Positions 1 through 58,823 of a DNA stretch of 64,000 bases are shown piece by piece. Below the pieces are notes generated by a model, which saw only the letters and a program-made list of their open reading frames with translations, was not told the origin of the DNA and searched no databases. Location of the stretch: assembly GCF_020745735.1 (NCBI RefSeq), contig NC_083422.1, positions 25,792,001 through 25,856,000 on the forward strand, in the 5' to 3' direction. The translations under genes and the position numbers were made by a program. Each line of letters begins with the position of its first letter. The stretch's first letter is position 1. This DNA comes from Hemiscyllium ocellatum (lineage: Eukaryota).

Positions 1-1045
1 AGTCATACAAATAAAAATAATTGGCAAAGGAGTAATTGCCATAGTACCACTGTTCTTTCAATTTCATTAGCATGATTTAAAATAGAGCTGTTAAAATTTT
101 CACCCTTTTTTGACTATCCTTTGTCCTCCATATGCAAACTAAACAAAATAACAATACTTATTTTTCATTCCAAGTGAAACTGCACTCAGTTCAAGTCAGA
201 ACTATAAATGCATTTGAATGTTATAATTAGACTTAGCCCAAGTTAGTTTCCACTTAAAATTTATTAAACAGTCATTTGCTACCCTTTAAATTAGGTCGAG
301 AAAAAGGTTGTATCAGGCATTAATATAAACCTTTCTGCAGCACATTATTGGTCTGAAAACTAACTGAAGTTTATCAACCACTCCCTAATCAATTAAATTT
401 AAGCAGCTGCTGTGAAGTGTAAAAGCAACTTAACCATTCTTTTGATAATATGAGGTATTTGCAGCTGTTTTTCTTCAAACAATGCTTGTTTCTGCACGGT
501 ACAAGTAATTGCTTCAAGTGGCAAACGTGAAGAGAGGGTTTGGGACCGTGTTCCCTCCACATCATTTCACTGTTTAAAATTTCTTAGCATGTCCATGCTG
601 AATTCTCCTGGCGCAGAGGTTACAAATTTGCCAGTTACAGCTGCCACAAGGAAATCTATTTCTCACTAAGTGTTATATTTTTGGTGAGATTTTTGTGCAT
701 TGTAAAATGAAGCATGGCAGAGATCAAATTTGGGCCAGATTTTCCAGGCATTGTCACTGAGCTAATTTATTATTTATGCAATGAAAGGGCTCCACATTTC
801 TGACAGGAGATTCTGATCAGGGCTCCTTCAGAAATGTAGAACTGTTCTTTCACTCCAGATCCCTCGGAGTGCCAGACAGTTGTGAAAAGATAGGAGAAAG
901 TGAGGACTGCAGATGCTGGAGATCACCTCATCTTCATTCCCCTACGCTCTCGGATTAACGAGTTCAACATGCGGCGAGACATCGAACAATTCTTCCGCCA
1001 CCTTCGCCTCCGCGCCTACTTCTTCAACCAGGATTCTCGCCCACC

Positions 1046-1944
1046 CTCTGACACCCCTTCTCCCGCCTCCAACACACCCCACACCGTGCTGGCCTCTTAC
1101 CCGCCCTCGATCTCTTCATAGCCAACTGCCGCCGCGACATTAACCGCCTCAACCTCTCCACCCCTCTCACCCTCTCCAACCTCTCACCCTTGGAACATGC
1201 AGCCCTGCAATCCCTCCATTCCAACCCGAACCTCACTATCAAATGTGCAGACAAGGGAGGCGCGGTAGTAGTTTGGTGCACCGACCTTTACACTACTGAG
1301 GCTAAATGCCAGCTCGCGCACACCTCCTCCTACTGTCCCCTTGACCATGACCCCACCTCCCACCAACAAACCATTAACTCTCAGACCATCCATAACCTCA
1401 TCACGTCAGAGGATCTCCCATCCACTGCCTCCAACCTCATAGTCCCACAACCCCGCACCGCGCGTTTCTACCTCCTGCCCAAAATGCACTTGCATGGGCC
1501 CCAGCTATGCCTGCCTCTTCGTAGGATATGTGGAACAGTCCATCTTCTGCAGCTACACTGGCACCACCCCCCCACCTTTTCCTCCACTACATCGATGATT
1601 GTATCGGCGCTGCCTCATGCTCCCACGAGGAGGTTGAACAGTTCATCCACTTTACCAACACCTTCCACCCTGACCTCAAATTTACCTGGACCATCTCAGA
1701 CTCCTCCCTCACCTTCCTAGACCTTTCCATTTCTATCTCGGGTGACTCTGACACCCCTTCTCCCGCCTCCAACACACCCCACACCGTGCTGGCCTCTTAC
1801 CCGCCCTCGATCTCTTCATAGCCAACTGCCGCCGCAACATTAACCGCCTCAACCTCTCCACCCCTCTCGCCCTCTCCAACCTCTCACCCTTGGAACATGC
1901 AGCCCTCCAATCCCTCCGTTCCAACCCCAACCTCACGATCAAAT
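1046..1944 (+). repeat. 199-bp direct duplication inside the PLE (1046-1244 = 1746-1944)
   Basis: Direct alignment at offset 700; about 6 mismatches counted by eye. Confidence 0.9.
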
Positions 1945-3037
1945 TATCATTTACTACAAACCGACCGACTTCCACAGCTACCTAGACTACACCTCCTCCC
2001 ACCCTGCCCCCTGTAAAAATGCCATCCCATACTCCCAATTCGTTCGGCTCCGCCGCATCTGCTCCCAGGAGGCCCATTTCCAATACCGTACAACCCAAAT
2101 GGCTTTCTTCTTCAGAGATGGCAATTCCCCCCCAGACGTGATCAATAATGCCCTCCACTGCAACTTCCCACTCCTCCGCCCTTGAGCCCCGCCTCTCCAA
2201 TCACCACCAGGACAGAACCCGACTGGTCCTCACCTACCACCCCACCAACCTCCACATACATCGTATCATCCGTCGTCATTTCCGCCACCTCCAAACGGAC
2301 CCCACCACCAGAGATATATTTCCCTCCCCTCTCCTATCAGCGTTCCGAAAAGACCACTCCCTCCATGACTCCCTCGTCAGGACCACACCCCCCACCAATC
2401 TAACCTCCAATCCTGGCACCTTCCCCTGCAACCGCAAGAAATGCAAAACCTGCGCCCACACCTCCCCCCTTACTTCCCTCCAAGGCCCCAAGGGATCCTT
2501 CCATATCTGTCACAAATTCACCTGCACCTCCACACACATCATTTACTGCATCTGCTGCACCCGATGTGGCCTCCTCTATATTGGGGAGACAGGCCGCCTA
2601 CTAGCGGAACGTTTCAGAAAAAACCTCTGGGACACCCGGACCAACCAACCCAACCACTCTATGGCTCAACACTTCAACTCCCCCTCCCACTCCACCAAGG
2701 ACATGCAGGTCCTTGGACTCCTCCATCACCAGACCATAGCAACACGACGGCTGGAGGAAAAGCGCCTCATCTTCCGCCTAGGAACCCTCCAACCACAAGG
2801 GATGAACCTAGATTTCTCCAGTTTCCTCATTTCCCCTCCCCCCGACTCTCAGTCAAATCCCTCGAACTCAGCACCGCCTTCCTAACCTGCAATCTTCTAC
2901 CTGACCTCTCCGCCCCCACCACCACTCTGGCCTATCACCCTCATCTTGACCTCCTTCCACCTTTTGCATTTCCAACACCCCTCCCCCAAGTCCCTCCTCT
3001 CTACCTTTTATCTTAGCCTGCTGGACACACTTTCCTC

Positions 3038-3073
3038 ATTCCTGAAGAAGGGCTCATGCCTGAAACGTCGATT
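3038..3073 (+). ncRNA. Minimal type I hammerhead ribozyme motif (PLE pseudo-LTR)
   Basis: CTGAAGA-aGGGC-tcat-GCCT-GAAA-CGTC; conserved core boxes, stem II and GUC cleavage triplet. Confidence 0.8.
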
Positions 3074-3829
3074 CTCCTGCTCTTTGGATGCTGCCTGACC
3101 TGCTGCGCTTTTCCAGCAACACATTTTCAGCTCAGTTGTGAAAAGATGACCAGGCCATTTTTTCTCATAATTTCCATTTGCGGTCTTCTGTGACATAAAG
3201 GTCCAACATCACACACAGGTCCTGTGAAAGGGTAAGTACATAAGATGAATGTGTGAGATGTGGGTGTCAGGAGGCCAGTGTGCCAGGTGATTACCTGAAG
3301 TTGGCAAGAAGGCCACGTAAGTGATAAAGTTTAAGGTCAGTTGGGATGCCAAATGCAATGGTGAGAGTAGTGAGTGTTGGGTCTTGTGACAAAGGGTCTT
3401 GGATTTCAGGGGAGACAAGACTTCAGGTCCAATGGTGGAGATTGTTACATCCTTAGGGGAAAGGGAGATAAATTTAGGTTCTGGAGGATCAGATTTTTGG
3501 GAGAGGTGTAATTGGGGTCGGATGTGGTGATAAGTTAGGGTCAGTTTAAACTAGCAGTTAAACTAGATTTTTAATAGTTTAACTTTTCCTGAGTAACTTT
3601 TTACTTAATGCAGCAAAACCTTCCAAATTCTGAGTTATATAGATACTTCAGGAGGGTTCTGGGTGTAGCAAAATCAATTTCCCAGGCAATTGCCTGAACA
3701 CCTGCTATGCTGGGGATTCTGCAGGGGTCCCATGCCTGGCCACCTTAACCGCTGTCTGAAATGGTCTATCGAGCTGCTACAAAGCTGATAGAAAGTGGGG
3801 GGTGGGGGGGCACCTGGCTTATTCCTTGA

Positions 3830-3930
3830 TATAGGACATGGAGATGGCAAACATAGCCTGTTGACCTTGCAAAGTCATCAATATCTGTGGGCTTGTGACA
3901 AAATTGGGTGAGCTGTAAGATAGACTAGTG
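3830..3930 (+). mobile_element. L2/CR1-clade LINE fragment (start of APE endonuclease), continues at 8362
   Basis: NICGLVTKLGEL here resumes at 8362 as LVKLQPESVIVMESNLTDNVP; actagt is present at both junctions (3924-3929, 8363-8368). Confidence 0.5.
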
Positions 3931-4044
3931 TATCTATAAAACAAGAGAGGAAAAGGCCATTCAGCCCCTTGATCCTGCTCAACTATTCAATAAGACCATG
4001 GTTGATCTTATTGCAACTTCAAATCCACATCCCCCACCGCTCCC

Positions 4045-4045
<1 letters not shown>

Positions 4046-4081
<36 letters not shown>
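4046..4081. repeat. Poly(C) tract of about 36 nt (poly-G on minus strand)
   Basis: Uninterrupted C run read directly. Confidence 0.95.
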
Positions 4082-4082
<1 letters not shown>

Positions 4083-4616: not shown

Positions 4617-7600
4617 GAGCAAGGTGTGCCAAGCAGGCTAAGATAAAAGGTAGGGAGGAGGGACTTGGGGGAAGGGCGTTGGAAATGCGATAGGTGGAAG
4701 GAGGTAAAGGTGAGGGTGATAGGCTGAAGTGAGGGTGGGGGCGGAGAGGTCAGGTAGAAGACTGCAAGTTAGGAAGGTGGTGCTAAGTTCGAGGGTTGGG
4801 ACTGAGACAAGGTGGGGGGAGGGGAAATTAGGAAACTGGAGAAATCTGAGTTCATCCCTTGTGGTTGGAGGGTTCCTAGGCGGAAGATGAGGTGCTCTTC
4901 CTCCAGCCGTCGTGTTGCTATGGTCTGGCGATGGAGGAGTCCAAGGACCTGCATGTCCTTGGTGGAGTGGGAGGGGGAGTTGAAGTGTTGAGCCACAGAG
5001 TGGTTGGGTTGGTTGGTCCGGGTGTCCCAGAGGTGTTCTCTGAAACGTTCCGCAAGTAGGTGGCCTGTCTCCTGAATATAGAGGAGGCCACATCGGGTGC
5101 AGCGAATGCAGTAAATGATGTGTGTGGAGGTGCAGGTTATTTTGTGGCAGATATGGAAGGATCCCTTGGGGCCTTGAAGGGAAGTAAGGGAGGAGGTGTG
5201 GGGGCAAGTTTTGCATTTCTTGCAGTTGCAGGGGAAGGTGCTGGGAGTGGAGGTTAGGTTAGTGGGGTGTGTGGACCTGACGAGGGAGTCACGGAGGGAG
5301 TGGTCTTTTTGGAACGCTGATAGGGGAGGGGAGGGAAATATATCCTTGGTGGTGGGGTCCGTTTGGCGGAAATGACGACGGACGATACAATGTATGTGGA
5401 GGTTGGTGGGGTGGTAGGTGAGGACCAGTGAGGTTCTGTTCTGGTGGCAATTGGAGGGGCGGGGCTCAAGGGTGGAGGAGTGGGAAGTGGAGGAGATGTG
5501 GTGGAGAGCATCGTCAATCACATCTGGGGGAAAATTGTGGTCTTTGAAGAAGGAGGCCATTTGGGCTGTACGGTATTGGAACTGGTCCTCCTGGGAGCAG
5601 ATGCGGCAGTGACAAAGGAATTGGGAATATGAGATGGCATTTTTACAGGGGGCAGGGTGGGAGGAGGTGTAGTCTAGGTAGCTGTGGGAGCCAATCAGTT
5701 TATAGTAAGTGTCCATGTTGATTTGGTTGCCCGAGATAGAAATGGAGAGGTCTGGGAAGGGGAGGGAGGAGTCTGATACGGTCCAGGTAAATTTGAGGTC
5801 GGGGTGGAAGGTTGGTAAAGTGGATGAACTGTTCAACCTCCTCGTGGGAGCACGAGGCAGCGCCGATACAGTCATCGATGTAGCGGAGGAAAAGGTAGGG
5901 GGGGTGGTGCCAGTGTAGCTGCGGAAGATGGGCTGTTCCACATATCCTACAAAGAGGCAGGCATAGCTGGGGCCCATGCAGGTGCCCATGGCTACTCCTT
6001 TGGTTTGGAGGAAGTGGGAGGATTGGAAAGAGACATCGTTCAGAGTGAGGACTAGGAGGGTCCTATTTCTACCTCCCGTTTCTACCTCCTGCCCAAAATC
6101 CACAAACTTGACTGCCCTGGCCGACCCATTGTCTCAGCCTGCTCCTGCCCCACAGAACTCATCTCTGCATACCTCGACAAGGTCCTGTCCCCCTTAGTCC
6201 AAGAACTCCCCACCTACGTTCGGGACACTACCCATGCCCTCCAATCCCTCCATGATTTTTGCTTCCCCAGTCAACAACGCCTTATCTTCACCATGGACAT
6301 CCAGTCCCTGTACACCTCATCGCCCATCATGAAGGACTCAAAGCCCTCCACTACTTCCTTTCCCGCTGTACCAACCAGTACCCTTCCACTGACACCCTCC
6401 TTCGACTGACTGAACTGGTCCTCACTCTGAACAACCTCTCTTTCCAATCCTCCCACTTCCTCCAAACCAAAGGAGTAGCCATGGGCACCCACATGGGCCT
6501 CAGCTATGCCAGCCTCTTCGTAGGATATGTGGAACAGCCCATCTTCCGCAGCTACACTGGCACCACCCCCCACCTTTTCCTCCGTTACATCGATGACTGT
6601 ATCGGCGCTGCCTCGTGCTCCCATGAGGAGGTTGAACAGTTTATCCACTTTACCAACACCTTCCACCCCGACCTCAAATTTACCTGGACCGTCTCAGACT
6701 CCTCCCTCCCCTTCCCAGACCTCTCCATTTCTATCTCGGGCGACCAAATCAACATGGACATTTACTATAAACCGACCGATTCCCACAGCTACCTAGACTA
6801 CACCTCCTCCCACCCTGCCCCCTGTAAAAATGCCATTCCATATTCCCAATTCCTTCGTCTCCACCGTATCTGCTCCCAGGAGGACCAGTTCCAATACCGT
6901 ACAACCCAGATGGCCTCCTTCTTCAAAGACCGCAATTTCCCCCCAGACGTGATCGATGATGCCCTCCACCGCATCTCCTCTACTTCCCGCTCCTCCGCCC
7001 TCAAGCCCCACCCCTCCAATCGCCATCAGGACAGAACCCTACTAGTCCTCACCTACCACCCCACCAACCTCCATACACATCGTATCGTCCATCATCATTT
7101 CCGCCACCTCCAAACAGACCCCACCACCAAGGATACATTTCCCTTCCCTCCCCTATCAGCGTTTCAAAAAGACCACACCCTCCGTGACTCCCTCGTCAGG
7201 TCCACACCTCCCATCAACCCAACCTCCAATCCCGGCACCTTCCCCTGCAACTGCAAGACATGCAAAATTTGTGCCCACATCTCCCCCCTTACTTCCCTCC
7301 AAGTCCCCAAGGGATCCTTCCATATCTGCCACAAATTAACCTGCACCTCCACACACATTATTTACTGCATCCACTGCACCCGAAGTGGCCTCCTCTATAT
7401 TGGGGAGACAGGCTGCCTACTTGCGGAACGCCCGGGGACACCCAGACCAACCAACCCAACCACCCCATGGCTTAACACTTCAACTCCCCCTTCCACTCCA
7501 CCAAGGACATGCAGGTCCTTGGACTCCTCCATCGCCAGACCATAGCAACATGACGGCTGGAGGAAGAGCACCTCATCTTCAGCCTAGGAACCCTCCAACT

Positions 7601-7872: not shown

Positions 7873-8349
7873 CTCCTGCTCCTTGGATGCTGCCTGACCT
7901 GCTGTGCTTTTCCAGCAACACATTTTCAGCTCTGATCTCCAGCATCCTCACTTTCTCATTGTACTCCAGATGCCAGTTTACTGGTACCCTGTTTTATTGA
8001 AGCATAACCTCCCTATTTTCATGTTCAGCTCATCTTGTGATAAATGAAAACATTCTGTTAGATTACTTAATTATTCACTGTAGCCGCACACTAACCATTT
8101 GTGATTCATACATGACAATATGTACATCTCAGATCTCTCACCATTTAGGTTCATTTTGTTCTTCTTGCCAAATGGACAGTTTTATATATTCCCACATTGT
8201 ACTCCATTTTCCACATCTTTGCCCACTTAAACTATCAATATCTTCTTGTATCCTTGGGTCTTCTTCACAACTTGCTTCCTTACCAATCTTTGTGTCAGCA
8301 ACAAATCTGGCAACAATACCTCCCATCCCTTCAAGTCAGATTCTAGGAT

Positions 8350-13745: not shown

Positions 13746-14422
13746 CACATTTCTAATTGAAGAGTAAAGGCCCATAGTTGAAGACTCCCGTGAGTTTAAA
13801 AGCAGAATGAGAGAATGAAATAAATGGAGAAGTAATACACTTGCCTTTATATGTCATCTTTTACATCCCCTGAAAATTCTAATGTGCTCTCTAGCCAATC
13901 AATGAAATGTTGTTTTATAGGCAATTGCAAATGTTAACCTAAGCACAGCTGGGTTCCACAAGTAGCATCGGACAAACATATAATTTAAGAGGAGTGGACC
14001 ATTCTGCCTCTCCTGCTGCTCTGACGTTTGATAACATCTGATCTAATTATGGCTACTATTTTCCTCTCCCAGCCCCCACACCACCCACCTACCCCTTCCC
14101 ACCCCCAGTCAGTCAGTAATGTATATACCTCAGCTTTCATCAGTCAGTAATCTATTTAACTCAGCCTTACAAATATCCAATAGCCCCACCTCCAGTGCTC
14201 TTTGAGGAACAGAAACCCATAGGCTAGCAATCTTTGGAGGAATAAAAAACCTCATTTCTATCTTAGAAGTGTGACCCCTTTATTTTTAAAATATGCCCCT
14301 TAAGTTTTAGTCTCTCTCATAAGCATAAAATCCTTTCAGCATCCACCTGTATGTCCTTCAGGATTTTGTATATGTTTCAAATGATCACCTCTCATTCTTG
14401 CGAGCTCTAATGGATATAAACC

Positions 14423-14516
14423 ATTTCTGATGAAGGGTTGAAACGTTGATTTTCCTGCTTTTCCGGCACCACACTCTCCACTTTAATCTTCAGCATCTGT
14501 AGTCCTCACTTTTACT
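14423..14516 (+). mobile_element. Degraded mini-PLE 3' end (hammerhead with deleted stem II, plus tail)
   Basis: ctgatgaagggtt-gaaacgttgattttcctgc...cagcatctgtagtcctcactttt. Confidence 0.65.
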
Positions 14517-14679
14517 GAGTTAATATGCCCAAACTGCCCAATCTTTCTTCATAAGACAATCATTTCCACCCAAGAATCAGCTGAATGAAGCTCTTTGGAC
14601 TGTCTTCAGTGTCTTTTAATCAATTGAGATAAATTACCAGTTAAGCCATTGGTGATGTTGGTGGGGGATATGTGATGAC

Positions 14680-14902
14680 AGCTGAAAATGTGTTGCTGGT
14701 TAAAGCACAGCAGGTCAGGCAGCATCCAAGGAACAGGAAATTCGACGTTTCGGGCATAAGCTCTTCATTTTCTGATGAAGGGCTTGTGCCCGAAACGTCG
14801 AATTTCCTGTTCCTTGGATGCTGCCTGACCTGCTGTGCTTTAACCAGCAACACATTTTCAGCTCTGATCTCCAGCATCTGCAGACCTCACTTTTTTCTCG
14901 AA
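14680..14902. mobile_element. Palindromic mini-PLE: 89-bp inverted arms (14680-14768 / 14775-14863) plus 3' tail
   Basis: Arms differ at 2 positions; 6-nt loop. TSD gatatgtgatgacag at 14667-14681 and 14903-14917 (last 2 nt overlap the element end). Confidence 0.93.
14769..14803 (+). ncRNA. Minimal type I hammerhead ribozyme, intact core
   Basis: ttt-CTGATGA-aGGGC-ttgt-GCCC-GAAA-CGTC-gaa. Confidence 0.85.
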
Positions 14903-15199
14903 GATATGTGATGACAGGAAAACTGTTCTATTCCATTTTGAATATTACTGCGGTAAAGTTTACACCAAGGTGAGAATGCTGAGAGGGCCGCGTTCTAATG
15001 TCAAAATATGGCATTTCCAACAATGCAGCACTCCGACACTTAAGTGGGAAGTGCACTAAAAGCATTCCAGTTGATTTGGATAATGGAAAGTTTGCGTTTT
15101 AAATTTCTGAGAAGTTTTTTATTTATTATGTTGATGGAAATTAAAAAGTAAAGTATTACTGTTTAGTTCTCCACACTAAAACATTGTCTTGCTTTCTCA

Positions 15200-34420: not shown

Positions 34421-35402
34421 CCATAGGATGCCTTTGAGGCATACTGTTTTAATCAAAGACAAGGGTAGTTTAGCTGGTGTTTTGATTCCTCAACAGTGGT
34501 GAATACTTCAGATGTCCTTTGAATTTTCAGTGTTCTACAGTTTATTTTTAATCAAATGCCACTGCCAATTCTTCCTTCTTGAAAAACCAAGACAATAATT
34601 TCTCCAGTTGGTTCCAGTCAAAAATCCATCATCTAAAGCAGTTTCCAGAAATTCAGTTGTTTTGTGTATTTCAAAATATGAATTCCATTGTTGCAAGCTT
34701 GATAATTATAGGTGTCTTTTATCTTCATATAACACAGAAGTAAAAATCAAATAGTGGATGAGGAGTTCTGACTGGGTAGACTAGTTTTCATGTGCTTTGA
34801 GAAAAATTGTAATTGGAGCTTAGACAATTTTGTTTATTCCACACTGGGTTCATAACGCTTGGCTAACCTGAATAGTCAATTGATTGCTGTTGCCCTTTTA
34901 AGTCAACATTTTCTTCTTTCGCAAAACCATCTCTGTCCACTTAAGTTTCGGACATTAAAATCCGGTGATGCAATTCAGAAGTCGTCACATTTTACCACTA
35001 TTGTGACACTCGTAGCAGTTAAATTGGTGCAGTTGTGTCTGAGGTGAGAAGTTGTCTTTGATGAACTCTGCAACTCAAGTGAGGGAAGCAAGAAAATAGC
35101 AGCTTGCATGGAGGGTAGGGCCAACAGGAACAAGTCAGGGGCTGAGACGGTGGCATCTTGGGTCTTGATCTGGGCTTTGAAGAATGGAAGAGGGATAACA
35201 GGGACGACAGAGACTGGCATTGAGGGGAGGGGCATTTGATTTGACAGGGGTGTAGGCTCATGAGGCGCATTTTTCAAAGGGAATGTCACAGGACCTAATC
35301 TTGTTACAAGGTCGGGGTAATGGAGCAGAGGAAGAATCCCCATGTGGAGTGAGGCCAGTTGGGGTGAGTGAAAGTTGAAGTGTAATTTACTTTTCGACTC
35401 TT

Positions 35403-35590
35403 CGACTCTGATCCCTGGCATCTGCAGTCCTCACTTTCTCCTAGTTGATGTATCCTTAAGCAAAGATTTGGAATGGGAATCACAACAACAGCAGGAGGAA
35501 AACAGACACTCTATGTTTTATAAAATATGCAAAAGACTAGTGGAAAAATTACAGCAACAAACATATAGTCACCCTAGCAAGAGCAATACA
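35403..35590 (+). repeat. About 188-bp direct duplication (copy at 37097-37284) comprising PLE tail plus downstream flank
   Basis: Ungapped alignment at offset 1694, roughly 88-90% identical by eye. Confidence 0.88.
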
Positions 35591-35726
35591 CCGTAACCAT
35601 CCACGTAAAATGTAAAGGTCACTGGAGAAACTGAACAAGTCATTACTTAGTGGCTGGATGAACAAATCCCATGGACACAGATTTCCATGTTTGCCTTGTT
35701 CACACAATTCACTTGGTAGAATAGCT

Positions 35727-36619
35727 AAGGTACACAGGAAAGCCACTCACACAGACCAAGTCCTGAACTACGAGAGCAACCACCCCAACACACACAAAAG
35801 AAGTTGCATCAAGACACTGTTCAAAAGGGCCACAACACACTGCAGTACACCCGAACTACAAAAAGAGGAAGAAGAACACCTATACAATGTATTCGCCAAA
35901 AACGAATTTCATCAATAGATGCCTAAGGGAAAGACAATGAAATGAGGACATGCCACAACCCAAAGGACTAGCCACACTACCATACATCAAAAACATTTCT
36001 GAACTGACAGCTAGACTACTGCGATCACTAGGACTCATAACAGCACACAAATCAACAGCCACTCTCAGACAACCACTCACCAGGACGAAGGTGAGATACC
36101 CAGCATGAGCAAAACCAATGTAGTGTACAAAATCCCATGCAAGGACTGCACAAAACACTACATAGGACAAACAGGAAGACAGCTAATGATCCGCATCCAT
36201 GAACATCAACTAGCCACGAAACGACATGACCAGCTATCCTTAGTAGCCACACACTCTGATGACAAGCAACATGAGTTTAACTGGGACAACACTACAATTA
36301 TAGGACAAGCCAAACAGAGAACAGCCAGGGAATTCCTAGAGGCATGGCACTCATCCACAGATTCAATCAATAAGCACATTGACCTGGACTCAATATACCG
36401 GCCACTGCAGCGGTCAGCTGGACCTGACGACCAGAAGCAGCAGATACAAATCACTATAAATGCAGGAGGAAACATCACAGAAGTGCTTCACAGGAGGCTC
36501 CAAAGCACTGAGGATGTCACCTAGACAGGGGACGAAACGTCTGCAACACAAATTCCCAGCTCAGCGAACAGAACCACAACAACGAGCACCCAAGCTACAA
36601 ATCTTCTCCCAAACTTTGA
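35727..36619 (+). mobile_element. Poseidon/Penelope-clade PLE, 5'-truncated (RT thumb + GIY-YIG + 3' end)
   Basis: VHRKATHTDQVLNYESNHP; NVVYKIPCKDCTKHYIGQTGR...HEH; REFLEAWHS; frameshifted. Confidence 0.92.
36505..36544 (+). ncRNA. Minimal type I hammerhead ribozyme, intact
   Basis: GCA-CTGAGGA-tGTCaCC-tagaca-GGgGAC-GAAA-CGTC-TGC; 3-bp stem I (GCA/TGC). Confidence 0.85.
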
Positions 36620-36744
36620 AGATCTTGTTTCTCACACCTTGGGAGCTCACAGCCTCCTAAGTTTTTCAAAGAGCCTGCGCAGAATGATGATTGAATTGTC
36701 TGATCCTAGAGTTTGCAAATTGAGTAGGGGTGAGGTATAAGGAT

Positions 36745-36883
36745 GCTGCAAATGTGTTGCTGGTCAAAGCACAGCAGGCCAGGCAGCATCTCAGGAATAG
36801 AGAATTCGACATTTCGAGCATAAGCCCTTCATCAGAAATTTGCAGCTGTGATCTCCAGCATCTGCAGACCTCACTTTTTACCC
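36745..36883. mobile_element. Asymmetric mini-PLE: minus arm with hammerhead (36804-36838), about 9-bp plus arm and tail
   Basis: TSD tgaggtataaggat(g) at 36731-36744 and 36884-36897; reverse complement reads CTGATGA-aGGGC-ttat-GCTC-GAAA-tgtc. Confidence 0.88.
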
Positions 36884-36992
36884 TGAGGTATAAGGATGGT
36901 TGGAGATATAAAGATGAAGTAATCCAAAGACGTGCTATATGATTCTGAACAAGTAATTCTGGGGAATTACACTTGTGATGTACCCTGAAGGG

Positions 36993-37136
36993 GGAGAAAG
37001 TGAGGGCTGCTGATGAATGGCTAATGCCCAAATCATTGATTACCCTGCTCCTTGGAGACTGCTTGACCTGCTGTGCTTTTCCAGCACCACATTCTTTGAC
37101 TCTGATCTCCAGCATCTGCAGTCCTCACTTTCTCCT
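36993..37136 (+). mobile_element. Degraded mini-PLE (partial inverted tail, decayed hammerhead, tail)
   Basis: ggagaaagtgagggctg / ctgatgaatggctaatgccc... / ctgatctccagcatctgcagtcctcactttctcct. Confidence 0.75.
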
Positions 37137-37399
37137 AGTTGATGTATCCTTGAGCAAAGATCTGGAATGGGAATCATAACAACAGCAGGAGGAAAACAGA
37201 CCTTCTATGTTTTATAAAATATGCAACAGACCTGTGGGAAAATTACAGTAACAAGCATATAGTCACCCCAGCAATAGCAATACATAGGAACATGTAAAGA
37301 ACATTTGCTTCCAAAGTAATGCATCAGTACTTGTTCTTTCCAAGCACAATCTCACACTGTAATAAGCTGTCAAAAAAAAACACTCACTATCCATTGACT

Positions 37400-37949: not shown

Positions 37950-38042
37950 ACAAGAACGGTCACTGGACTCAAAATGTTAACTGTTTTCTTTCTACAGATG
38001 CTGCCAGACCTGCTGAGTTTCTGCAGCAATTTGTTTTTTTGC
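37950..38042 (+). mobile_element. Old PLE-type 3' end (another subfamily; minus-strand copy at 47920-48012)
   Basis: acagatgctgccagacctgctgagtttctgcag is shared with 47920-48012, which retains a hammerhead core. Confidence 0.55.
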
Positions 38043-43629: not shown

Positions 43630-44205
43630 AAGAAACATACAGCCAGAGAGATTTGCTAGAGGTGCTCAGGAGGAGTGGGACCCAGAGAAATAGTGAGGAA
43701 AGAGATCAATATGAGACTGGTACAGTTGGGAAAGGGAGCAAGTCAGTCAAGACAGGAAGGAACGAAGCAGAGAACAGGGCAGGACTGATAAATTTAACTG
43801 CATTTTTTAAAACGCAAGAGCCCTAACAGGGAAGGCAGAAGAACTCAGGGCATGGTTAGAAACATGGGACAGGAATATCATATCAATTACAGAAACATGG
43901 CTCAGGGATGGTAGCTTAATGTTCCTGGATACAAATGTGAAAGGAAGGATAGAAGGGGGAAGGCAAGAGAGGAGGGGAAGTGGCGTTTTTGATAAGGGAT
44001 AACATGACTGCTGTACGTAGGGAGGATATCACTGAGAATAAATCCAGGGAATTTATTTGGATGGAACTGAGAAATAAGAAGGGGATGATCACCTTATTGG
44101 GATTGGGATATAGATCCCCTAATTGTCAGCGGGAAATTGAGAAACAAATTTGCAATGAGATCTCAGTTATCTGTAATAATCGGTGGTTATGGTAGGGATT
44201 TTAAA
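43630..44205 (+). mobile_element. CR1 5' ORF2 fragment (APE endonuclease)
   Basis: NARAL, ITETWL, VAFLI, IWMELRNKKG, YRSPN and GDF motifs. Confidence 0.8.
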
Positions 44206-44206
44206 T

Positions 44207-44275
44207 TGAAAAATGTGTTGCTGGAAAAGTGCAGCAGGTCAGGCAGCTTTCAAGGAGCAGGAGAATTGATGTTTC
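44207..44275 (-). mobile_element. Tail-less Neptune-like PLE end fragment
   Basis: aaaatgtgttgctggaaaagtgcagcaggtcaggcagc...gtttc, homologous to 4525-4592. Confidence 0.8.
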
Positions 44276-44281
44276 TTTGTA

Positions 44282-45035
44282 GGTCAGATCTTAAATGACA
44301 ATGAGATGGAGTTCAAGAAGGAGACTGAGTGTTTAGCAGCATGGCATGAAGACAACAATCCCTCCTTCAACGTTAGCAAAATGAAGGAGCTGGTCATTGA
44401 CTTCAAGAAGTGGAGTGGTCGACATTCCCCTCTTTACATCAATGGTGCTCAGCAATACGTCTTGGTCCACATACATTGACACCAAAAGGCAGCAATGCCT
44501 CTACTTCCTCAGAAGGTTCAAGAAATTCGGCACACCCATAAAGACTCTGACAAGTTTTTATAAATGCACCATAGAAAGCATCCTATCTGGATGCATCACA
44601 GCATGGTATGGCAACTGCTCTTCCCAAGACTGAAAGAAACTACGTTTGTGAACACAGCCCAGTCCATCATACGAACCATTCTCCCATCCACTGACTTCGT
44701 CCATACTTCCCATATTGGGAGAGCAACAAACATAACCCGGACCCTTCCCAGCCCAGTTATACTTTCTTCCAATCTCTTCCATCAGGCAGAAATTACAAGA
44801 GTTTGAAAACACATGTAAACAATTTCAAAAACATCTTCTTCCCGACTATTATCAGACTTTCGAATGGACTTCTTTCATATTAATGTTGATCTCTCTCTCT
44901 ATATCTTCTTGACAGCTGTAATATTCTATCAGTTCTGTTACTCTGATGCACTTGTATAGAACAATCTGTTTGTGAAGCACATACAACAATACTTTTCTCA
45001 CTGTACCTCGGCACATATACCAGTAATAAATCAAA
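44282..45035 (+). mobile_element. Rex1/Babar-like LINE 3' fragment
   Basis: K.KELVIDFKK; QQCLYFLRRFKKFG...FYKCTIESILSGCITAWYGNC. Confidence 0.75.
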
Positions 45036-45044
45036 TACCATATT

Positions 45045-45582
45045 CATTCATGTGATGTGGGCATTGCTGGCTAGACAACATTTATTGTCAATCTCTAGTT
45101 ACCCTTGAGAAGGTGACAGCATGATGCCTTCTTGAACCGCTGCAGCCCAGTGCTGCAGAGAGATCCACAATGCCATTAAGGAGGAATTCCAGGAATTTGT
45201 TCCAGCAACAATAAAGGAACTATATATTTCCAAGTCAGGATGGTGAGTGGCTTGAAGAGGAACTTTCAGGTGTTCGCATATGTCTACTGTCCATATTCTT
45301 CTGGATGGAAGTGGTTGTGTGTTTGGAATGTCCTGTCTAAGGATCTTTGCTGAATTTCTGGAATGTATCTTGTAGATAATATACATTGCTGCTTCTGAGC
45401 TTTGGTGGAGGAAATGGATGTTTGTGCCAATGAAATGGGCTGCTTTGTCCTGGATGGTGCCACGAGTCTTGAGTGTTGTTGGAACTGCACCCATCAGGCA
45501 AGTGGGCAGTTTTCTATCACACTCCAGACTTTTGCCAGAGATAACATGGACAGGCTTTGGAAAGTCAGTAGGCAAGTTACAG
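45045..45582 (-). mobile_element. L2/CR1-clade LINE 3' fragment
   Basis: MGAVPTTLKT..TIQDKAAHFIG motif; shared 3' end. Confidence 0.65.
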
Positions 45583-45597
45583 ACAAAAACGTCAGGG

Positions 45598-45720
45598 CTA
45601 ATGAAGAGCTTATGCCCGAAACATCTATTCTCCTGCTCCTCGGATGCTGCCTGACCTGCTGTCCTCTTCCAGCATCATACTCTCGACTCTGATCTCCAGC
45701 ATTTGCAGTCTTCACTTTCT
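45598..45720 (+). mobile_element. Mini-PLE 3' end starting at a decayed hammerhead core, with tail
   Basis: ctaatga-agagc-ttat-gccc-gaaa-catc ... ctgatctccagcatttgcagtcttcactttct. Confidence 0.8.
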
Positions 45721-47683
45721 AATAGGAAGTTGAAGTGTCAACATTATCATAACATCAAAACATTGGATATGAATCTGCAACACAGAAATGAGTTACTGTT
45801 TAAAATCTATGCCAAACTATTGACCTGATGCAGAGAAATGTCAGCAATGATATACCAAAGAAGGCTAACATCATTAACTCAGTCCACAGGAAGCTATGAT
45901 TGGCTTATTTGGGAACAACTTTTCATAGAAAGCTTTAAGAGAATGGTTATGTAGTGGCTGAGCAGAATTCCTGGGCTATATTCCAAAAGGACTGGGTTGA
46001 TGTACTGGAAGGATAAGATCAAATGGACGAGAGGGCTTTTTGTTCCCCCCGAGCCAAGCTACTATTGGATCATACTTGATGAATCATAGACTCCAGGCTA
46101 TTAACAGGTGCACAATGTTCTTGGCCATATAGGTGAAGATTTTCAATACAACTGCATCCATTGTGGTGGAGTTAGCAATATGTAAATACTATGGCTATCT
46201 CCTCATTCATGTAAATAGAGCATATGTCCCAGTTCAACAGTGCAGTTATCTGGCTATATGTTCAAAGGGGACCTAAGAGCATGTAAGGTTAGCATGACGT
46301 AAAGCTTGCTTCCAACACTTAAAGGCATCCTGCCCCTCTTAAAAGGAAGGTTCACTGAATAATAGAAGATTGTTGCTAATTAATACTGATGCAAATGCGA
46401 ACAAAGAATATGAAACATTAGCCTCAGGAAATCCCATTCCCCCAGCCCTCACATGTGACACTGGAAACTTTCGTGGCTGAGAAAGACCATGTTTCCACGA
46501 GGGGTCAGGGGGCCCTCAGCATAATCTTTTGAACGGAATGGGGGGGGAGGTCAAAGGGTGATCAATACTAATGCTGAGGGACTGGCAGCAGGGCTGAAAG
46601 GTGTACACTTACCTCACACAGATGGCCAAGGTTAGTGAACGTATCTTTACAGCATTTAGTCTGTATATTTTTACAGACATCTATGCAGACATAACCCCTA
46701 CTGCTAATATGAACAGCAAAGCACTATTGTAGCAGCAGTGGTCAATGAGGACGAACTGGTTCTGTGCTAAATGCACAAAATTATATTTGAGGCATATTGT
46801 CGGTGCAGATTTAATGGGCCGAAGAGCCCCTTCTCAGCTGTATGATTCTATGGAGAGACCTCAGGATAGCCACTTTCCAACAAATGAAACGTAAGAAATC
46901 ATTTGGACTTCTTGTATGTAAAAGGAGAAAGCAAAAGTATGTGGCATTCTAGTGTTTGGAGAAAGCATAGATTCTGCAAATGATCTTGACTGTTGACATG
47001 TTTTGGTTAACACAGGAACAGGTTGTCAGTATTTATGCCAACATAATTCTGTGTCATCATATTGCTCTGGTAGAGTCACAGCCAGCGATGTTGTTGAAAG
47101 TGCTGGGCTTGCACCAATCTGTTATTATTGATAAATCCAATCACAGATAAAGGCAGATGTATTTTCGTATTCTCTGGGGCTTTCTGGTTGGTTATGCTGT
47201 TTCCTATCATTTGTACTTTACCAACAAGATAAATATACAGTAGCAACAAATGTCTGCAATTAACAGTTTCAAGTTACAACAAAAGCAAATGCAATGGTTA
47301 AAACAAAAACTAAACAAACATTAACATAAAATTGCAAGATTGAATTAAATAAATTCACGTTTAATCATGGTATGTATTACAGAATACTGTGGAATTGTGC
47401 GTTTGTCGTCTGAAGGAAAACAATTTGCAGTAATCCTCGAAGACCTTTGTAGCAGACATATTGAAGAAAAGGGTAAGATTCATGAACCACTCACAGAGAT
47501 CTTCACAATGCAAGTGAACTGGTTCATCACAACCACCCCAGTCAGCCTGATCACTGCACATAACCATTCCTCTGTCCTACCAAGAAAACTAACCCTGTTA
47601 CAGTAGAAACAGGAACAAATGAATGAAAAGCAGAAGTGGGCCATTCAGCCCTTCAAACCTTAATTGCCATTCAACAAGATCAT

Positions 47684-47819
47684 CAGGAGGCTGGAAGAGC
47701 ACAGCAAGCCAGGCAGCATCAGGAGGTGGAGGACTCAATGTTTTGGGTGTAACGGTTATACCCACCAGCCTCCTGCTTGTCTACCTTATATTCCAGCATC
47801 TGCAGTTTTTTTTGTCTCT
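47684..47819. mobile_element. Older asymmetric mini-PLE (distinct subfamily): minus arm, 11-bp inverted overlap and tail
   Basis: caggaggctgg / ccagcctcctg inverted pair; tail ttccagcatctgcagtttt; degenerate TSD attcaacaagatcat (47669-47683) vs attcaagaaaatcgt (47820-47834). Confidence 0.65.
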
Positions 47820-47974
47820 ATTCAAGAAAATCGTGGCTGACCTACTTGGGTTTTGTAGTCCACATTTCCATGTACCCTAATAACCTTGGATTCCTTTGCA
47901 TAACAACAATCTACCCACAAACAGAGTATCCTGCAGAAACTTAGCAGGTCTGGGAGCATCTGTGAGAGAACCAG

Positions 47975-48012
47975 AGCTAACATTTCGAGTTCAGTTGAAC
48001 TGTTCTTCAGTA
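47975..48012 (-). ncRNA. Hammerhead-like motif in an old PLE end
   Basis: Reverse complement reads CTGAAGA-ac-AGTTCA-ac-TGAACT-c-GAAA-tgtt. Confidence 0.55.
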
Positions 48013-48877
48013 TACTGAGTTATTAACTTATTTTAGTTGTGCACCCCATTTGTTCTCTAAACTCCCCTGGTACATTCCTGACCTTGTTCCACAATAACCT
48101 CTCCATATGGCTGTAACATTCATGTTCAGTCAGAAAGATCTAACTATTTAACTCTGCTTCTAAATATTGCTATAAAACTTCTGAATCTTCACATCTGTTA
48201 TACTCTACACTTTCAGATCTGTCTAAAAGCACACCTCACTTTACTATGCATGCAAAGAATTTGGACAAATAACAAATAAACCAATGCAAATGCAGCTTTT
48301 ACTTTATTAAATCATGTTTTCTATGCTTTTATTTTTATTGCTAGCATTTATTTTGTAATATATTCTCAGTGGTTAACTCTCACATTTCTTTGAACTGGAA
48401 GAAAATATCCATCAAATCATATGTTGTACGATCATAGAATCCATATATTTTTAAACTCACCAGCAAGAAAGGGCTAGCTTAAATGAGGAAAATCCAGGAA
48501 AATTATATTGAATCAAACAAGAATCAAACAATAAACAGTTTTCAATTTGAACATTGTACTCTGAAATCTTTACTAAGATATTTTGTGAAGTGGAGAGGGG
48601 AGATTAATCTCTTTTGCATTTTTGACACAATATAACCTACACCGTAATCTGATGGAAGTGTGTGTTTGTTCAACATTTTTAGGCAGGTGTTATGTCAGTA
48701 AATGCATAAAGATATTAATTTTAAAAACTATTCATTTTTACACTGGATCCTGATGAACTGTTAGGATGACTGTCAATGAGTTCAGAGCCCTTGGCAACTT
48801 CGATACAGACTATCAAGCTTCTAGAATTTTCTAAATTATATTGGTTACGGACATCCCCTTGAATGAAATTGCTGACC

Positions 48878-49091
48878 CTAGATTAGTGGTACTGGAAGAG
48901 CACAGGAGTTCAGGCAGCATCCGAGGAGCAGTAAAATCGACATTTCGGGCAAAAGTCTTTCATCAGGAATGAAGGGCTTTTGCCCGAAACGTTGATTTTA
49001 CTGCTCCTCAGACGCTGCCTGAACTGTTGTGCTCTTCCAGCACCACTAATCCAGAATCTGGTTTCCAGCATCTGCAGTCATTGTTTTTCCC
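48878..49091. mobile_element. Palindromic mini-PLE (different subfamily): 86-bp arms (48878-48963 / 48969-49054) plus tail; hammerhead core on minus strand at 48935-48970
   Basis: Perfect 14-bp TSD tgaaattgctgacc at 48864-48877 and 49092-49105. Confidence 0.9.
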
Positions 49092-49200
49092 TGAAATTGC
49101 TGACCAGCAGTCCAAATGAAATTTCACATCGAAGTTTGCTTTGAATCACAGACAGTAGGCTCCGAGACATTGTCTTCAGGTTTACAATATGACAAAGGAT

Positions 49201-55199: not shown

Positions 55200-55760
55200 T
55201 GTCTCAGTTCCTCCATACTAGTCTTAATTCTGAAATTGCTTCTCCAATGTGCAGCCTTGAATAAACTAAAATTTCTTCCAATTAAACACTGGAAATCCAT
55301 CGTCTTTGATCCTATCACAAATTCTGCTCACAAATTAAGGTGCCTACAGTCTCAAAGTTGGTGTTCCAGTTGATTGATAGCTGAGCTTCCAATTCATACC
55401 CTCTATATCATTAAGACTGATCTTTAAATCCATCTCTATAAGTCAACATCACAGATTTGCACTCTCTCAGCCCATCTGTTGTTGAACTCCTCATCAAAGC
55501 TTTTCTTACCTCAAGATTAAACTATTCTAATATTCTCTTAGTTAACTTCTCATTTTCTATCCTCAAGAAATGTGAACTTATCCGTGACATTGCTTCTCAT
55601 ATTTTAAACACACTAAGTTCCTTTACAGACATCATGATGTGCTTACTGACCAATACTGACTTCTGGTCAGCCAAAACCTCGATGTTCAAACCCCTCCCTG
55701 AATTTACCCATCCCAATCTCTATAATCTTCTCCATAATGAATGAGCATTCCTCAATCCTG
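55200..55760 (+). mobile_element. Ancient L2 LINE 3' remnant
   Basis: VELLIKAFLTSRLNYSNILL resembles the L2 motif L.HA.V.SRLDYCN.LL. Confidence 0.55.
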
Positions 55761-58340
55761 CATCTTGTGAACATTTAACTCCAGAGTAACATAGAAAGCT
55801 AGCTTGTGGTATAAAAGCAGATAGTAAGAATTTCTACAAGTATTTAATTCGGAAAAGAGTAACTCGAGCTAATGCTGGTCTTCTAGAGAGGAAGGCAAGG
55901 AAATGCTGGAAATGTTGAAGAGTTTTTTGGGCTTGGATTCACTGTGGAAAATGACACAAAGATGTCTCAAAAATCAATTGGTGAAAGAGAGAGGGGAACT
56001 TAAAACATCAGGAAATACAGTTGATGGGAAAACCTACAGTCTTAAAGACTGCCTCGCCAGATCAGAGGAGCTTTAAAAAGTAGTGAAGTGATAGTTCATG
56101 CTTTGTTTACAATCTTCAATTCTTTCTTAAATTGTGTGTTTATGTATACAGTGACAGAGGACTAGAGAACAATACCCTGTTTATAGAAGAGTAGATGGAT
56201 ATGCATTATATTCAGACAAACTGCTCATTAGTTCTGGCCACCTTTATACTTTTACTGATTGATTTTCAATTTTGCACAGGGGAAGTTGAAATAAACAGCC
56301 AAATAGTAATGTTGGCATTTCAAATGTCAATAGCCATTTGTTTAGATGTTTGCTAACCAACCTGTTCAGACATGTATTATATACCTCTGGAGCAGGTGGG
56401 ACTTGAACTTGGGCCTCCTAGCTCAGCTGGAGAGAGATTGCTATTGCACCACAAGAGCCATTAGCCATCTGTTTAAAGAACTGAGCTGAATTACACTTTT
56501 CTGATAAGCATTATTGAGCAATCTGATTTCAAACATGCTGTCTGTTGGAAGAGATTGATTTGGCACCTCTCTGTCACTGACAGCTATTGTGGCTATAAAA
56601 ACATAGTAATAACCAAGGTTTTCACTGGTAGAAAAGTTGGCAATTGTAATGATGCTAATACTTGCAGCATTTGCTGTTATTACTGTGCAATACTGTTCCA
56701 AGGTGTGGCATTTGCAATGTAAAGGGGGGAAGAAAGTCACAAACTGCAGTTTGAGATACCCTGATCTGCTAAAAGAGTGCATTGCTGCATTCTCCAAAGA
56801 TGCAGTCAGCACTGACATCTGTAACCCGATGTGAACTTCGACCTTTACCTTCTGTTCTCTTGTAAATAATATGAAAAGGTTGAAAAGTATGAATTCAACT
56901 GAGATTTAACGGCTCAGAATTTCATCCGCAAGTCAGGTGTATAGAGCTGAGAAAATTGCTGGCTTTGCAAACTATCTTTTAGAAATGTTGATCTGAATGT
57001 CCGGTTTACCGTCCTGGGTGAGTTCTATTTGAAGTTTGAGTGGGGAACCCCAGAAATAGTGAGGTAGATGTTGGGTGGAGGCAGGCTGGGTAGATTGCAG
57101 AGCTCTGGCATGTGTCCAAAGTTTACACTGAAAGAATAACATATAAAATATCCCTCAAGTCTTCACCCCAAATACTCACCATTTCCATCTACAACACTTT
57201 GCCATTACACCTACCATGTCAACTCATCCAGTATCTACTATTCCCAGATTGCAGGACCTATGTAATGATGAGTTAAAATAAGACTCTACAAAGTAAAGTT
57301 TTATGTATCTATGCAGCCGCCACAATATTGAGGAACCATGCTCATTAATTAAAAAAAACTACATTTACATTTCTTCAACTATTTAGTGTCTTGTAACAAC
57401 AAACATTTCATTCAAGTGTAATATCCAATCTAACGAGGACGGACTCATATCCCCACTTTAAAGAGTCTCCAACCTCTTACATCTGCCAAACGAACTGAGA
57501 ATGATTGGCACCCGACTGTGTATGATTGTGTAATAAGTAAAGCAGCACTAATCCAGTAAAGAGAATGCTCAGACCTATATCAACAGACAAAGTAAGATTC
57601 TAACAACATTTTCTTTCAAAACACTCCAGACACTTTTTTCTATTCCAAAGATAACAAGGGTAGAACTTATAAATGCCTTAACATTTTCTTTTGACAATTG
57701 CTTTTGATAAGTTTGACAGTTACTTTTGGCACTTTTGAGAGTTGATTTTGACTAATCTGTTGACAGTTCCAATCAGCTTGACAGTAAATGTGTTTTTCCA
57801 CTTTTGAGGCCCACTCATGCCTACTTTTCATAATTTAACTGAGTATTTCATCTCTTCAAAAGGTCACCTGAATTCTCCAAGAAGTGCCCTGGACGATATC
57901 CAAATGAATACCTTACTTCTCCAAAACATATTGTGACATCTAAAGAGATGCACCGAATTCAAAGCTGCTCTTTACATGTCTACTTGGCACACTTTGTGTT
58001 TCACACCCATTAACTGCCAAAATCTGATGAGTGGAGGTAGCTCCTGGTTTAAATGGCTAGCTGCCTTGGTGAAATGTATCCCATATGGCTCCACATCATG
58101 GTGAAAACCCAGGTTCATGTTTTGTACTTAAAATATAATCAAGTTTTTATAGTGTATTAAATAATGATTAGTACTGAAAATATTAGTTTTTGGAACTGTG
58201 GGGTATCACTCCCTGCATTGTATAGTCTAAAAAAAAAGCATACATTTTAAAATAACAATTTATTTTTAGGTTGATGACATTTCAACTTCAACCACAGTCC
58301 ATAGTGAATGACCAGACCATTATTCCATTCTTTGTTATAT

Positions 58341-58765
58341 TGGATGTAGGTTTGCTCGCTGAGCTGGAAGGGTCATTTCCAGACATTTTGTTACCCTACT
58401 AGGTAACATCTTCAGTGGGCCTCAGACAAAACAATGCTGAAAATTCCTGCTTTCTCTTTATATGTTTGGGTTTCTTTGGGTTGGTGACATCATTTCCTGT
58501 GGTGAAGTCATTTCCTGTTCCTTTTCTCAGGGGTGATAGATGGGGCCTAACTCGGTGTGTTTGTTGATAAAGTTCCGGTTGGAATGCCATGCTTCCAGGA
58601 ATTCTCGTGCGAGTCTTTGTTTGGCTTGTCCTAGGATGGATGTGTTGGTCCAGTCAAAGTGGTGTCCTTCCTCAGCTATATGTGAGGGTATTAGTGAGAG
58701 AGGGTCACCAACTAGCCACAAAAAGACATGATCCTCAATCTGAGCTACAAATCTTCTAAAAAGTT
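58341..58765 (-). mobile_element. Poseidon-clade PLE fragment: minus arm 58341-58710, short plus piece and tail 58710-58765; decayed hammerhead at 58379-58418 (-)
   Basis: HHFDWTNTSILGQAKQRLAREFLEAWHS; 10-bp TSD tttgttatat at 58331-58340 and 58766-58775; tail gctacaaatcttct as at 36594. Confidence 0.85.
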
Positions 58766-58823
58766 TTTGTTATATACTCTATTGTATTCTTTGTTCTGTG
58801 AATAAAATCTGAACGCTAATCGA

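Follow-up and report, generated by a model that had tools for sequence, protein, structure and literature searches.

Inverted insertions in the window

The window analysed in this study is a 64-kb stretch of the shark Hemiscyllium ocellatum (assembly GCF_020745735.1, contig NC_083422.1, positions 25,792,001 to 25,856,000 of the forward strand), and all coordinates below are counted from its first letter. It contains seven inverted insertions, here called L1 to L7, that are assigned to the Penelope-like elements (PLEs) and are each bounded by a target-site duplication (TSD). In all seven the two arms are opposite in orientation with their 3' ends pointing outward. One arm per locus ends at a tail-less end point, X, while the partner arm is 27-44 nt longer and runs to the tail end, T. 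The copies in L1-L7, as well as insertion C described below, are all 5'-truncated.

L1, 877-891: left TSD, CAGTTGTGAAAAGAT, 15/15 against 3133-3147
L1, 892-925, minus strand: T-primed arm, the reverse complement of the 34-nt tail alone, with zero overlap with the other arm (nhmmer profile positions 94-123)
L1, 926-3132, plus strand: X-primed arm, a Neptune-type PLE body, 5'-truncated and internally rearranged, with reverse transcriptase (RT) YIDD, CX4CxxC linker and GIY-YIG
L1, 3133-3147: right TSD, from the TSD script
L2, 4509-4522: left TSD, 13/14 against 7957-7970
L2, 4523-6052, minus strand: tail-less arm, ~1530 nt, outer end ...CACATTTTCAG(g)
L2, 6053-6077: junction filler of ~25 nt preceding the longer arm
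L2, 6078-7929, plus strand: longer arm, ~1850 nt
L2, 7930-7956, plus strand: tail, 27 nt, lacking an internal stretch that other copies have
L3, 14682-14768, minus strand: tail-less arm; TSDs 14667-14681 and 14903-14917, GATATGTGATGACAG, 15/15
L3, 14772-14902, plus strand: tailed arm (arm 14772-14861, tail 14862-14902)
L4, 36746-36835, minus strand: tail-less arm from X to the CUGAUGA box; TSDs 36731-36745 and 36884-36898, 15/15
L4, 36836-36883, plus strand: T-primed arm, 10 nt before X and a 38-nt tail; TTTGCAG variant in both arms
L5, 47684-47753, minus strand: tail-less arm, end ...CCAGCCTCCTG; TSDs 47669-47683 and 47820-47834, 12/15
L5, 47756-47819, plus strand: T-primed part, with a 9-nt palindromic return (47756-47764), 11 nt before X (47765-47775) and a 44-nt tail (47776-47819)
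L6, 48878-48967, minus strand: tail-less arm; TSDs 48864-48877 and 49092-49105, 14/14
L6, 48968-49091, plus strand: tailed arm (arm to 49054, 37-nt tail 49055-49091)
L7, 58331-58340 and 58766-58775: TSDs, TTTGTTATAT, 10/10
L7, 58341-58705, minus strand: Poseidon-type tail-less arm with the endonuclease (EN) C-terminus, a minimal hammerhead and the end ...AAACCTACATCCA
L7, 58706-58765, plus strand: T-primed part, a piece of open reading frame (ORF) of ~27 nt (HQLATKRHD) fused straight to a ~33-nt tail

TSDs were checked by direct sequence reading of each locus and with a script that compares the flanks in a fixed register. They abut both ends in 7/7 loci, with matches of 15/15, 13/14, 15/15, 15/15, 12/15, 14/14 and 10/10 for L1 to L7, the TSD of L5 being the weakest. 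The chance probability of these matches in the fixed register is 1e-8 to 1e-4. An earlier reading made from the letters alone (the sequence-only reading) had described seven inverted, TSD-bounded insertions with a tail at one end only, and this description holds at every locus. Five of its locus coordinates agree with those given here, and those of L3 and L4 differ by 1-2 nt depending on how the bases common to TSD and arm are assigned. The graded series of inverted overlaps that it had claimed (0, ~9, ~11, 86, 89 and ~1500 bp) was also recovered, with measured overlaps of 0 nt in L1 and L7, ~10 nt in L4, 11 nt in L5, ~87-90 nt in L6 and L3, and ~1530 nt in L2, the arms of which are unequal (~1530 vs ~1850 nt).

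Identity of the elements

The nearest protein relatives of the retroelement ORFs in the window are from Chiloscyllium punctatum, Rhincodon typus and Stegostoma tigrinum, and the intact relatives in these genera carry RVT_1 (PF00078) and GIY-YIG (PF01541). Pfam searches of the decayed window ORFs themselves gave weak RVT_1 and GIY-YIG matches that were below cut-off. The ORFs at 2148-2885 (L1) and 6259-7545 (L2) contain ...YIDDCIGA... and ...IIYCICCTRCGLLYIGETGR...H..H, corresponding to an RT and a CCHH-type GIY-YIG nuclease, and cysteines lie between GIY and YIG in the L1/L2 nuclease. EN-containing (EN+) PLEs are characterised by one ORF in which an RT precedes a C-terminal GIY-YIG with two Cys between GIY and YIG. 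A Zn-finger-like CX4CxxC linker is found upstream of GIY-YIG in both (PCNRKKCKTC in L1, PCNCKTCKIC / PCNCKKCKTC in L2). A CX2-5CxxC linker in this position is the mark of Neptune and Nematis (PMC8557442), and L1 and L2 are assigned to the Neptune or Nematis configuration, between which the linker does not distinguish. The Poseidon-type ORF at 36105-36524 reads VVYKIPCKDCTKHYIGQTGR..IHEH. In the copy at 35950-36524, to which L7 aligns, CX2-5CxxC is absent upstream of VVYKIPCKDC, and by the absence of the linker this copy and L7 are classed as Penelope/Poseidon type. Judged by sequence, the window insertions are EN+ PLEs of several Neptune-type subfamilies and one Penelope/Poseidon-type family. 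They display the insertion signature of this group, namely TSDs of 10-15 bp, 5' truncation, an inverted adjacent copy and tails of 27-44 nt.

End points X and T

Arms were aligned in sense orientation and used for an nhmmer profile, and the Poseidon-type copies were aligned separately. The tail-less ends of L1, L2, L3 and L4 and of the solo arm E share one alignment column (...CACATTTTCAG plus 0-2 nt); the X-primed arm of L1 terminates in ...TTTTCAGCT without a tail. The tail-less ends of L5 (...CCAGCCTCCTG), L6 (...ACTAATCYAG) and L7 (...AAACCTACATCCA) lie at the homologous column in their respective subfamilies. The proposal that the tail-less arm stops at a homologous, fixed internal point is supported within the window, with one column for five arms and the homologous column for three other families. 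The T end is slightly fuzzier than X, and the tail motif CCAGCATCTGCAG is conserved across Neptune-type subfamilies. Both end points are discrete and occur on the left or the right side, on solo as well as paired arms. They recur in at least four Neptune-type subfamilies and one Poseidon-type family, in agreement with the earlier claim that they are common to several subfamilies and two clades. In the Neptune-type elements X and T lie ~250 nt downstream of the ORF stop (in L1 the ORF ends at ~2885 and X is at 3132).

Public contigs over L5 showed that other genomic copies run on from 47684 into the reverse-complemented tail, which means that the left end of L5 is truly tail-less for its family. 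The opposite-strand joint 47684/47776 of L5 is seen in public contigs with 11 letters in common. When contigs were mapped on 44100-49200 and 14800-14925, the T end was visible (consensus CTCCT, then AT-rich flank). The matches listed were dominated by clipping at subfamily differences, and there were no X ends among them. The summed word depth of the tail in this mapping was about half of that of the conserved core, though depth is not copy number. At 14893-14925 the consensus across hundreds of contigs has the tail ending ...CACTTTCTCCT, followed by AT-rich sequence, in line with reports that PLE endonucleases prefer AT-rich targets.

At X, the target and the RNA showed inconsistent microhomology in the alignment of window arms (0-4 nt), and flank-to-tail microhomology was likewise inconsistent across the aligned arms. 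The RNA fold around X and T showed no covariation and was not more stable than shuffles (z = -1.2). The conserved tail motif is able to pair with upstream CUGCUGUGCU or GAUGCUG, which would put X in a loop.

Paired arms as products of one event

In L1-L7 the TSD encloses the composite insertion and never a single arm, as expected from the claim that paired arms have a common TSD. The partners are also alike in sequence. Arm-arm identity is 97.6% in L3 and 87.7% in L6, where the partners are mutual best matches among 11 arms, and the arms of L4 share the private variant TTTGCAG. The L2 arms are 93.9% identical to each other vs 93.8-95.1% to L1, which fits an older insertion from the same subfamily.

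It could be argued that the paired arms are two independent neighbouring insertions of opposite orientation, chance arrangements or assembly artefacts, as PLE termini are dense in the window (~18 matches in 64 kb) and assemblies are known to struggle with inverted repeats. However, perfect TSDs of 14-15 bp surround composites and not single arms, and partner arms have subfamily and private variants in common. Additionally, two further samples of this organism yielded contigs that contain the unique flanks plus 27-33 nt of L5 and L6, although these contigs end inside the L5/L6 repeats and none spans a whole insertion. Independent adjacent insertions are effectively excluded, and this group of explanations as a whole is hardly credible.

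Contigs of two related species extend 25-27 nt from the unique flank into L5 (47684-47711) and L6 (48878-48903), with a flank divergence of ~4-5%; the overlap is below the 31-letter bridging criterion. The L5 and L6 insertions are probably older than the split of these species.

Census of PLE termini

A window-wide nhmmer search with the arm profile, covering every Neptune-type terminus, gave the ~18 matches mentioned above. Besides L1-L7 the following termini were found, together with the Poseidon-type copy:

A, 14422-14513, plus strand: solo arm, tailed (ends at T), no inverted partner seen
B, 35401-35437: duplicated copy of the end of insertion C
Poseidon-type copy, 35600-36612, plus strand: tailed; the L7-family tail is defined from it (ACGAGCACCCAAGCTACAAATCTTCTCCCAAA after X')
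Insertion C, 36990-37136, plus strand: T at both ends; TSD degenerate, ~12/13
E, 44207-44275, minus strand: solo arm, tail-less, ends at X
F, 45598-45720, plus strand: solo arm, tailed (ends at T)
G, 47931-48010, minus strand: solo arm, probably tail-less (X)

In insertion C, the final 20 nt of the tail stand reverse-complemented at 36990-37009 (minus strand) and are followed by arm, X and full tail (37010-37136). With this insertion included there are eight inverted TSD-bounded insertions in the window, and 7/8 have a tail at one end only. By end type, seven are X/T, one (insertion C) is T/T and none is X/X. If the ends were chosen independently at p = 0.5, the binomial probability of at least 7/8 mixed insertions is 0.035. 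This is suggestive of a tendency of X and T starts to pair within one event. The single tail/no-tail architecture that the sequence-only reading had claimed across the window is present throughout L1-L7, but its list was selective in that insertion C and the solo arms were omitted.

Hammerhead motif and the inner ends of short arms

The minimal hammerhead core CUGANGA-N10-18-GAAAYRU occurs seven times in the window vs 0.2 expected, and all occurrences are inside arms. The core reads CUGAUGA-AGGGCUUGUGCCC-GAAAC-GUC and has no helix III, which is the form of minimal hammerhead ribozyme described for metazoan PLEs (PMC4209133). A minimal hammerhead ribozyme motif is predicted on this basis in the terminal repeats. 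The Rfam hammerhead families gave no match in the whole window at the gathering threshold, and none in L3 or the Poseidon-type 3' end at E<=10. The palindrome of L3 (14720-14822) resembles a generic microRNA (miRNA)-like hairpin and scored with several Rfam miRNA models, the best at 37 bits vs a gathering threshold of 104.

The CUGAUGA box lies ~90 nt upstream of X, and 8/8 short arms (two each from L3 and L6, and one each from L4, C, F and A) start within ~6 nt of it.

Inner (5') ends of short arms: 14769-14775, 36833-36837, 37008-37012, 45598-45602, 48964-48970, 14425-14430

No arm in the window ends at the predicted GUC cleavage site. These data suggest that the RT preferentially stops or switches templates at the hammerhead core, or that the template was a short RNA. 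Because short arms start near the CUGAUGA box, the equal arms of L3 and L6 do not need a snap-back of the cDNA.

Comparison with described systems

The closest biochemical data are those of Frangieh et al. 2024 (Mob DNA 15:12, PMC11167929), who studied the purified protein of Poseidon_Ac (PAc) from Anolis carolinensis in vitro. This protein cleaves and extends both target strands, and RT begins at two adjacent internal sites of the RNA without homology to the target (PMC11167929). The genomic tail of PAc (~34 nt) is the sequence between the two start sites, and a hammerhead nearby is not used to define the insertion ends, its cleavage being unneeded (PMC11167929). The window insertions are similar in that their ends are at two discrete RNA positions and no arm ends at the GUC site. 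They differ in the location of these positions, which in PAc are within the 5' part of the ORF of a tandem transcript and in the shark Neptune-type elements ~250 nt past the ORF stop. Neither a pairing of starts in individual genomic insertions nor a class of T-primed arms stopping at X is reported in the PAc paper (PMC11167929).

The dual minimal hammerheads on opposite strands, 100-700 bp apart, that Cervera and de la Pena 2014 found in metazoan genomes (PMC4209133) are also relevant. L3 and L6 are such pairs, with one CUGAUGA-stem II-GAAAC-GUC per strand and no helix III, although TSDs and tail asymmetry of hammerhead pairs were not analysed in that study. For PLEs in general, Arkhipova 2013 reported that one of the inverted pseudo-long terminal repeats (pLTRs) bears a tail and that palindromes occur at the inverted junction (PMC3846280), and in Fig. 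2 of Craig et al. 2021 inverted insertions are drawn with a tail at a single end (PMC8557442). With these descriptions (PMC3846280, PMC8557442) the window insertions have in common an inverted 5'-truncated copy next to the element, TSDs of variable length (8-15 bp), a tail confined to one of the inverted ends (30-40 bp in the published architecture), palindromes where the inverted copies meet and terminal repeats with hammerhead motifs. They are unlike them in that most are tiny (136-223 bp) and without an ORF, and no direct (tandem) pLTR was found in the window.

Twin priming of the L1 retrotransposon, not to be confused with locus L1, was reportedly described by Ostertag and Kazazian in 2001 as a process in which the second nick primes cDNA on the element RNA and gives an inversion inside one TSD. 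The internal priming site of that retrotransposon is variable and based on microhomology, and its two segments lie side by side on one RNA without overlap. L7 is similar, having complementary breakpoints and an inverted piece that adjoins the end of the other arm on the RNA; its ORF piece HQLATKRHD is the RNA segment directly 5' of the inner end of the other arm. However, the internal site in the window is fixed, microhomology is 0-4 nt and the arms of L2, L3 and L6 overlap by 87-1530 nt. The features of L1-type twin priming were not found across the set, and only L7 shows adjacent breakpoints.

Proposed mechanism of integration

The insertions are very probably ordinary integration products of EN+ PLEs, with cDNA primed from both target strands at two start sites. 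Staggered nicks 10-15 bp apart, later seen as the TSD, would be made by the GIY-YIG endonuclease, and both freed 3' ends would prime reverse transcription. Each start would be at one of two fixed RNA sites, X just after ...CACAUUUUCAG or T 27-44 nt downstream, and the two antisense cDNAs on opposite target ends would be joined by template switching or repair. The outcome would be an inverted head-to-head insert with X and/or T as its outer ends. What the window itself shows is the geometry, the TSDs and the fact that X and T are discrete points recurring across families; the nicking, the extension and the start sites are taken from the literature (PMC11167929). Outward 3' ends, one TSD around each composite and partners of the same subfamily imply that cDNA was primed from both strands in a single event. 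The suggestion of the sequence-only reading that both target nicks prime cDNA agrees with this evidence from L1-L7 and with the in vitro data (PMC11167929). Its account is essentially the published PLE model, in which the one-sided tail and the two RT start sites were already described. One part of that account, a start at the RNA 3' end, is not supported, as both published starts are internal and nothing in the window shows that T is the RNA end. The likeness to L1 twin priming stands as far as priming of both strands is concerned, and fails for L2, L3 and L6. As their arms copy the same RNA segment twice, these three need two templates or strand displacement.

Two other origins of the palindromes were considered. 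L3 and L6 might be copies of a palindromic non-autonomous master (arm-arm-tail) that was transcribed and reverse-transcribed from T, so that the tail-less end would be the 5' end of the master RNA. Both are centred at the same place, the CUGAUGA box, and read-through of existing palindromes by RNA polymerase is plausible. However, the solo arms A and F and insertion C also start at this box, which makes it a general 5' stop point and no mark of a palindromic master, and the 97.6% identity of the L3 arms is what arms that started out identical at insertion would show. A master also leaves unexplained the unequal arms of L1 (2207 vs 34 nt), L2 (1530 vs 1850 nt), L4, L5 and L7, and the same X end on the solo arm E and on kilobase-long arms. 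It is therefore an unlikely source of L3 and L6. The older proposal of self-priming snap-back (Arkhipova 2013, PMC3846280; Craig 2021, PMC8557442) holds that one cDNA folds back and copies itself, with tail asymmetry arising from endonuclease resolution. The near-equal arms of L3 and L6, the 9-nt palindromic return at the L5 junction, the GGTCACC near-palindrome at the L7 junction and the palindromes at inverted junctions discussed in the literature (PMC3846280) are in line with it. However, a snap-back copy would carry a tail at each side or extend into the flank, and equal arms are predicted where those of L1, L2, L4, L5 and L7 are unequal. Snap-back also gives no reason for the tail-less end to meet the TSD at a single fixed nucleotide, and the 2024 biochemistry (PMC11167929) offers a direct alternative in two start sites on both strands. 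Snap-back is judged very unlikely.

Several points weigh against priming of both strands at paired X and T sites. Pairing is not obligatory, as is seen from the two T ends of insertion C and from the solo arms, some of which end at X and others at T; the fixed tail/no-tail rule of the sequence-only reading is accordingly not absolute. The sample is eight events from one window that was chosen with the pattern already seen. The overlaps of L2, L3 and L6 are impossible from a single RNA without strand displacement or reuse. In the in vitro study the use of the start sites did not differ between the two strands, which is compatible with pairing and gives it no support (PMC11167929). A genome-wide count of X vs T was attempted from public contigs and was uninformative.

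Under two-strand priming at X and T, the two starts of one event would tend to be one X and one T. In a subset of events a single RNA would serve both cDNAs, so that the T-primed cDNA halts at X or shortly after it. In length the T-primed arms are bimodal, and four of the seven extend only 0-11 nt past X (L1 0, L7 0, L4 10 and L5 11 nt). No X-primed arm is shorter than ~70 nt, and the two arms of L1 partition the RNA 3' region to within 1 nt. This hints that in L1, L7, L4 and L5 the T-primed polymerase collides with the X-started product on one RNA. A more specific version, which is possible but doubtful, is that X and T are used as an obligate pair by a PLE RT-EN dimer with its subunits ~35 nt apart on one RNA, the T-primed polymerase then halting at, or displacing, the X-primed product. 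Each subunit would prime from one target strand. Halting would give abutting arms (L1, L7) or a 10-11-nt overlap (L4, L5), and displacement would give the full palindromes of L3, L6 and L2. If this dimer exists, the tail length is its footprint and the size series has a physical cause.

Significance

Among eukaryotic retrotransposons, PLEs are the class about which least is understood, and how their integration proceeds after the first priming is still open. The window provides clean in vivo examples from a shark of what the in vitro work of 2024 predicts, namely two start sites and priming on both strands, from two clades and with sizes of 136 bp to 3.4 kb. The X/T pairing, the pile-up of T-primed arms 0-11 nt past X and the stops at the hammerhead core may be refinements beyond the literature. 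If the X/T anti-correlation, the pile-up and the hammerhead-core stops were confirmed genome-wide, they would set limits on models for the coordination and joining of the two cDNAs. There are also consequences for annotation, since a single PLE event can mimic two inverted fragments, a hairpin or a miRNA-like precursor. The miRNA-like scores of L3 show that PLE fold-backs are open to mis-annotation as miRNA precursors.

Minor observations

The body of L1 contains a ~190-nt segment (residues ~138-204 of the homologue P0004) twice, at 1047-1243 and 1747-1943, and residues ~286-415 of the same homologue are deleted at 1488. This internal rearrangement looks like template switching within the element. 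A blastx suggestion that the reverse-complemented tail at the left of L1 is a sense ORF was rejected, as true homology starts only at 927 (LIFIPLR).

Next to solo arm F, a stretch of 21 nt (45577-45597, ACAGACAAAAACGTCAGGGCT) lies between a possible TSD copy (AGTAGGCAAGTT vs AATAGGAAGTT) and the start of the arm. It includes AAACGTC, the 3' core of the hammerhead up to the predicted cleavage site.

A direct duplication of 192 bp with 91% identity was found at 35399-35590 and 37093-37284. It contains the last ~40 nt of insertion C (X and tail) and ~150 nt of its right flank, and between the two copies of the duplication lie the Poseidon-type copy, L4 and the 5' portion of insertion C. The duplication is not a simple TSD, and candidate origins are segmental duplication, capture during PLE integration and assembly error.

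A third, more diverged hammerhead-bearing family is represented at 37967-38035 (plus strand) and 47931-48010 (minus strand), with the pattern CTGAAGA...CGAAATGTTA...CAGATGCTGCCAGACCTGCTGAGTTTCTGCAG. The copy at 47931 ends ...TTTCTGCAG and the copy at 37967 extends further, so this family may also have tail-less and tailed ends.

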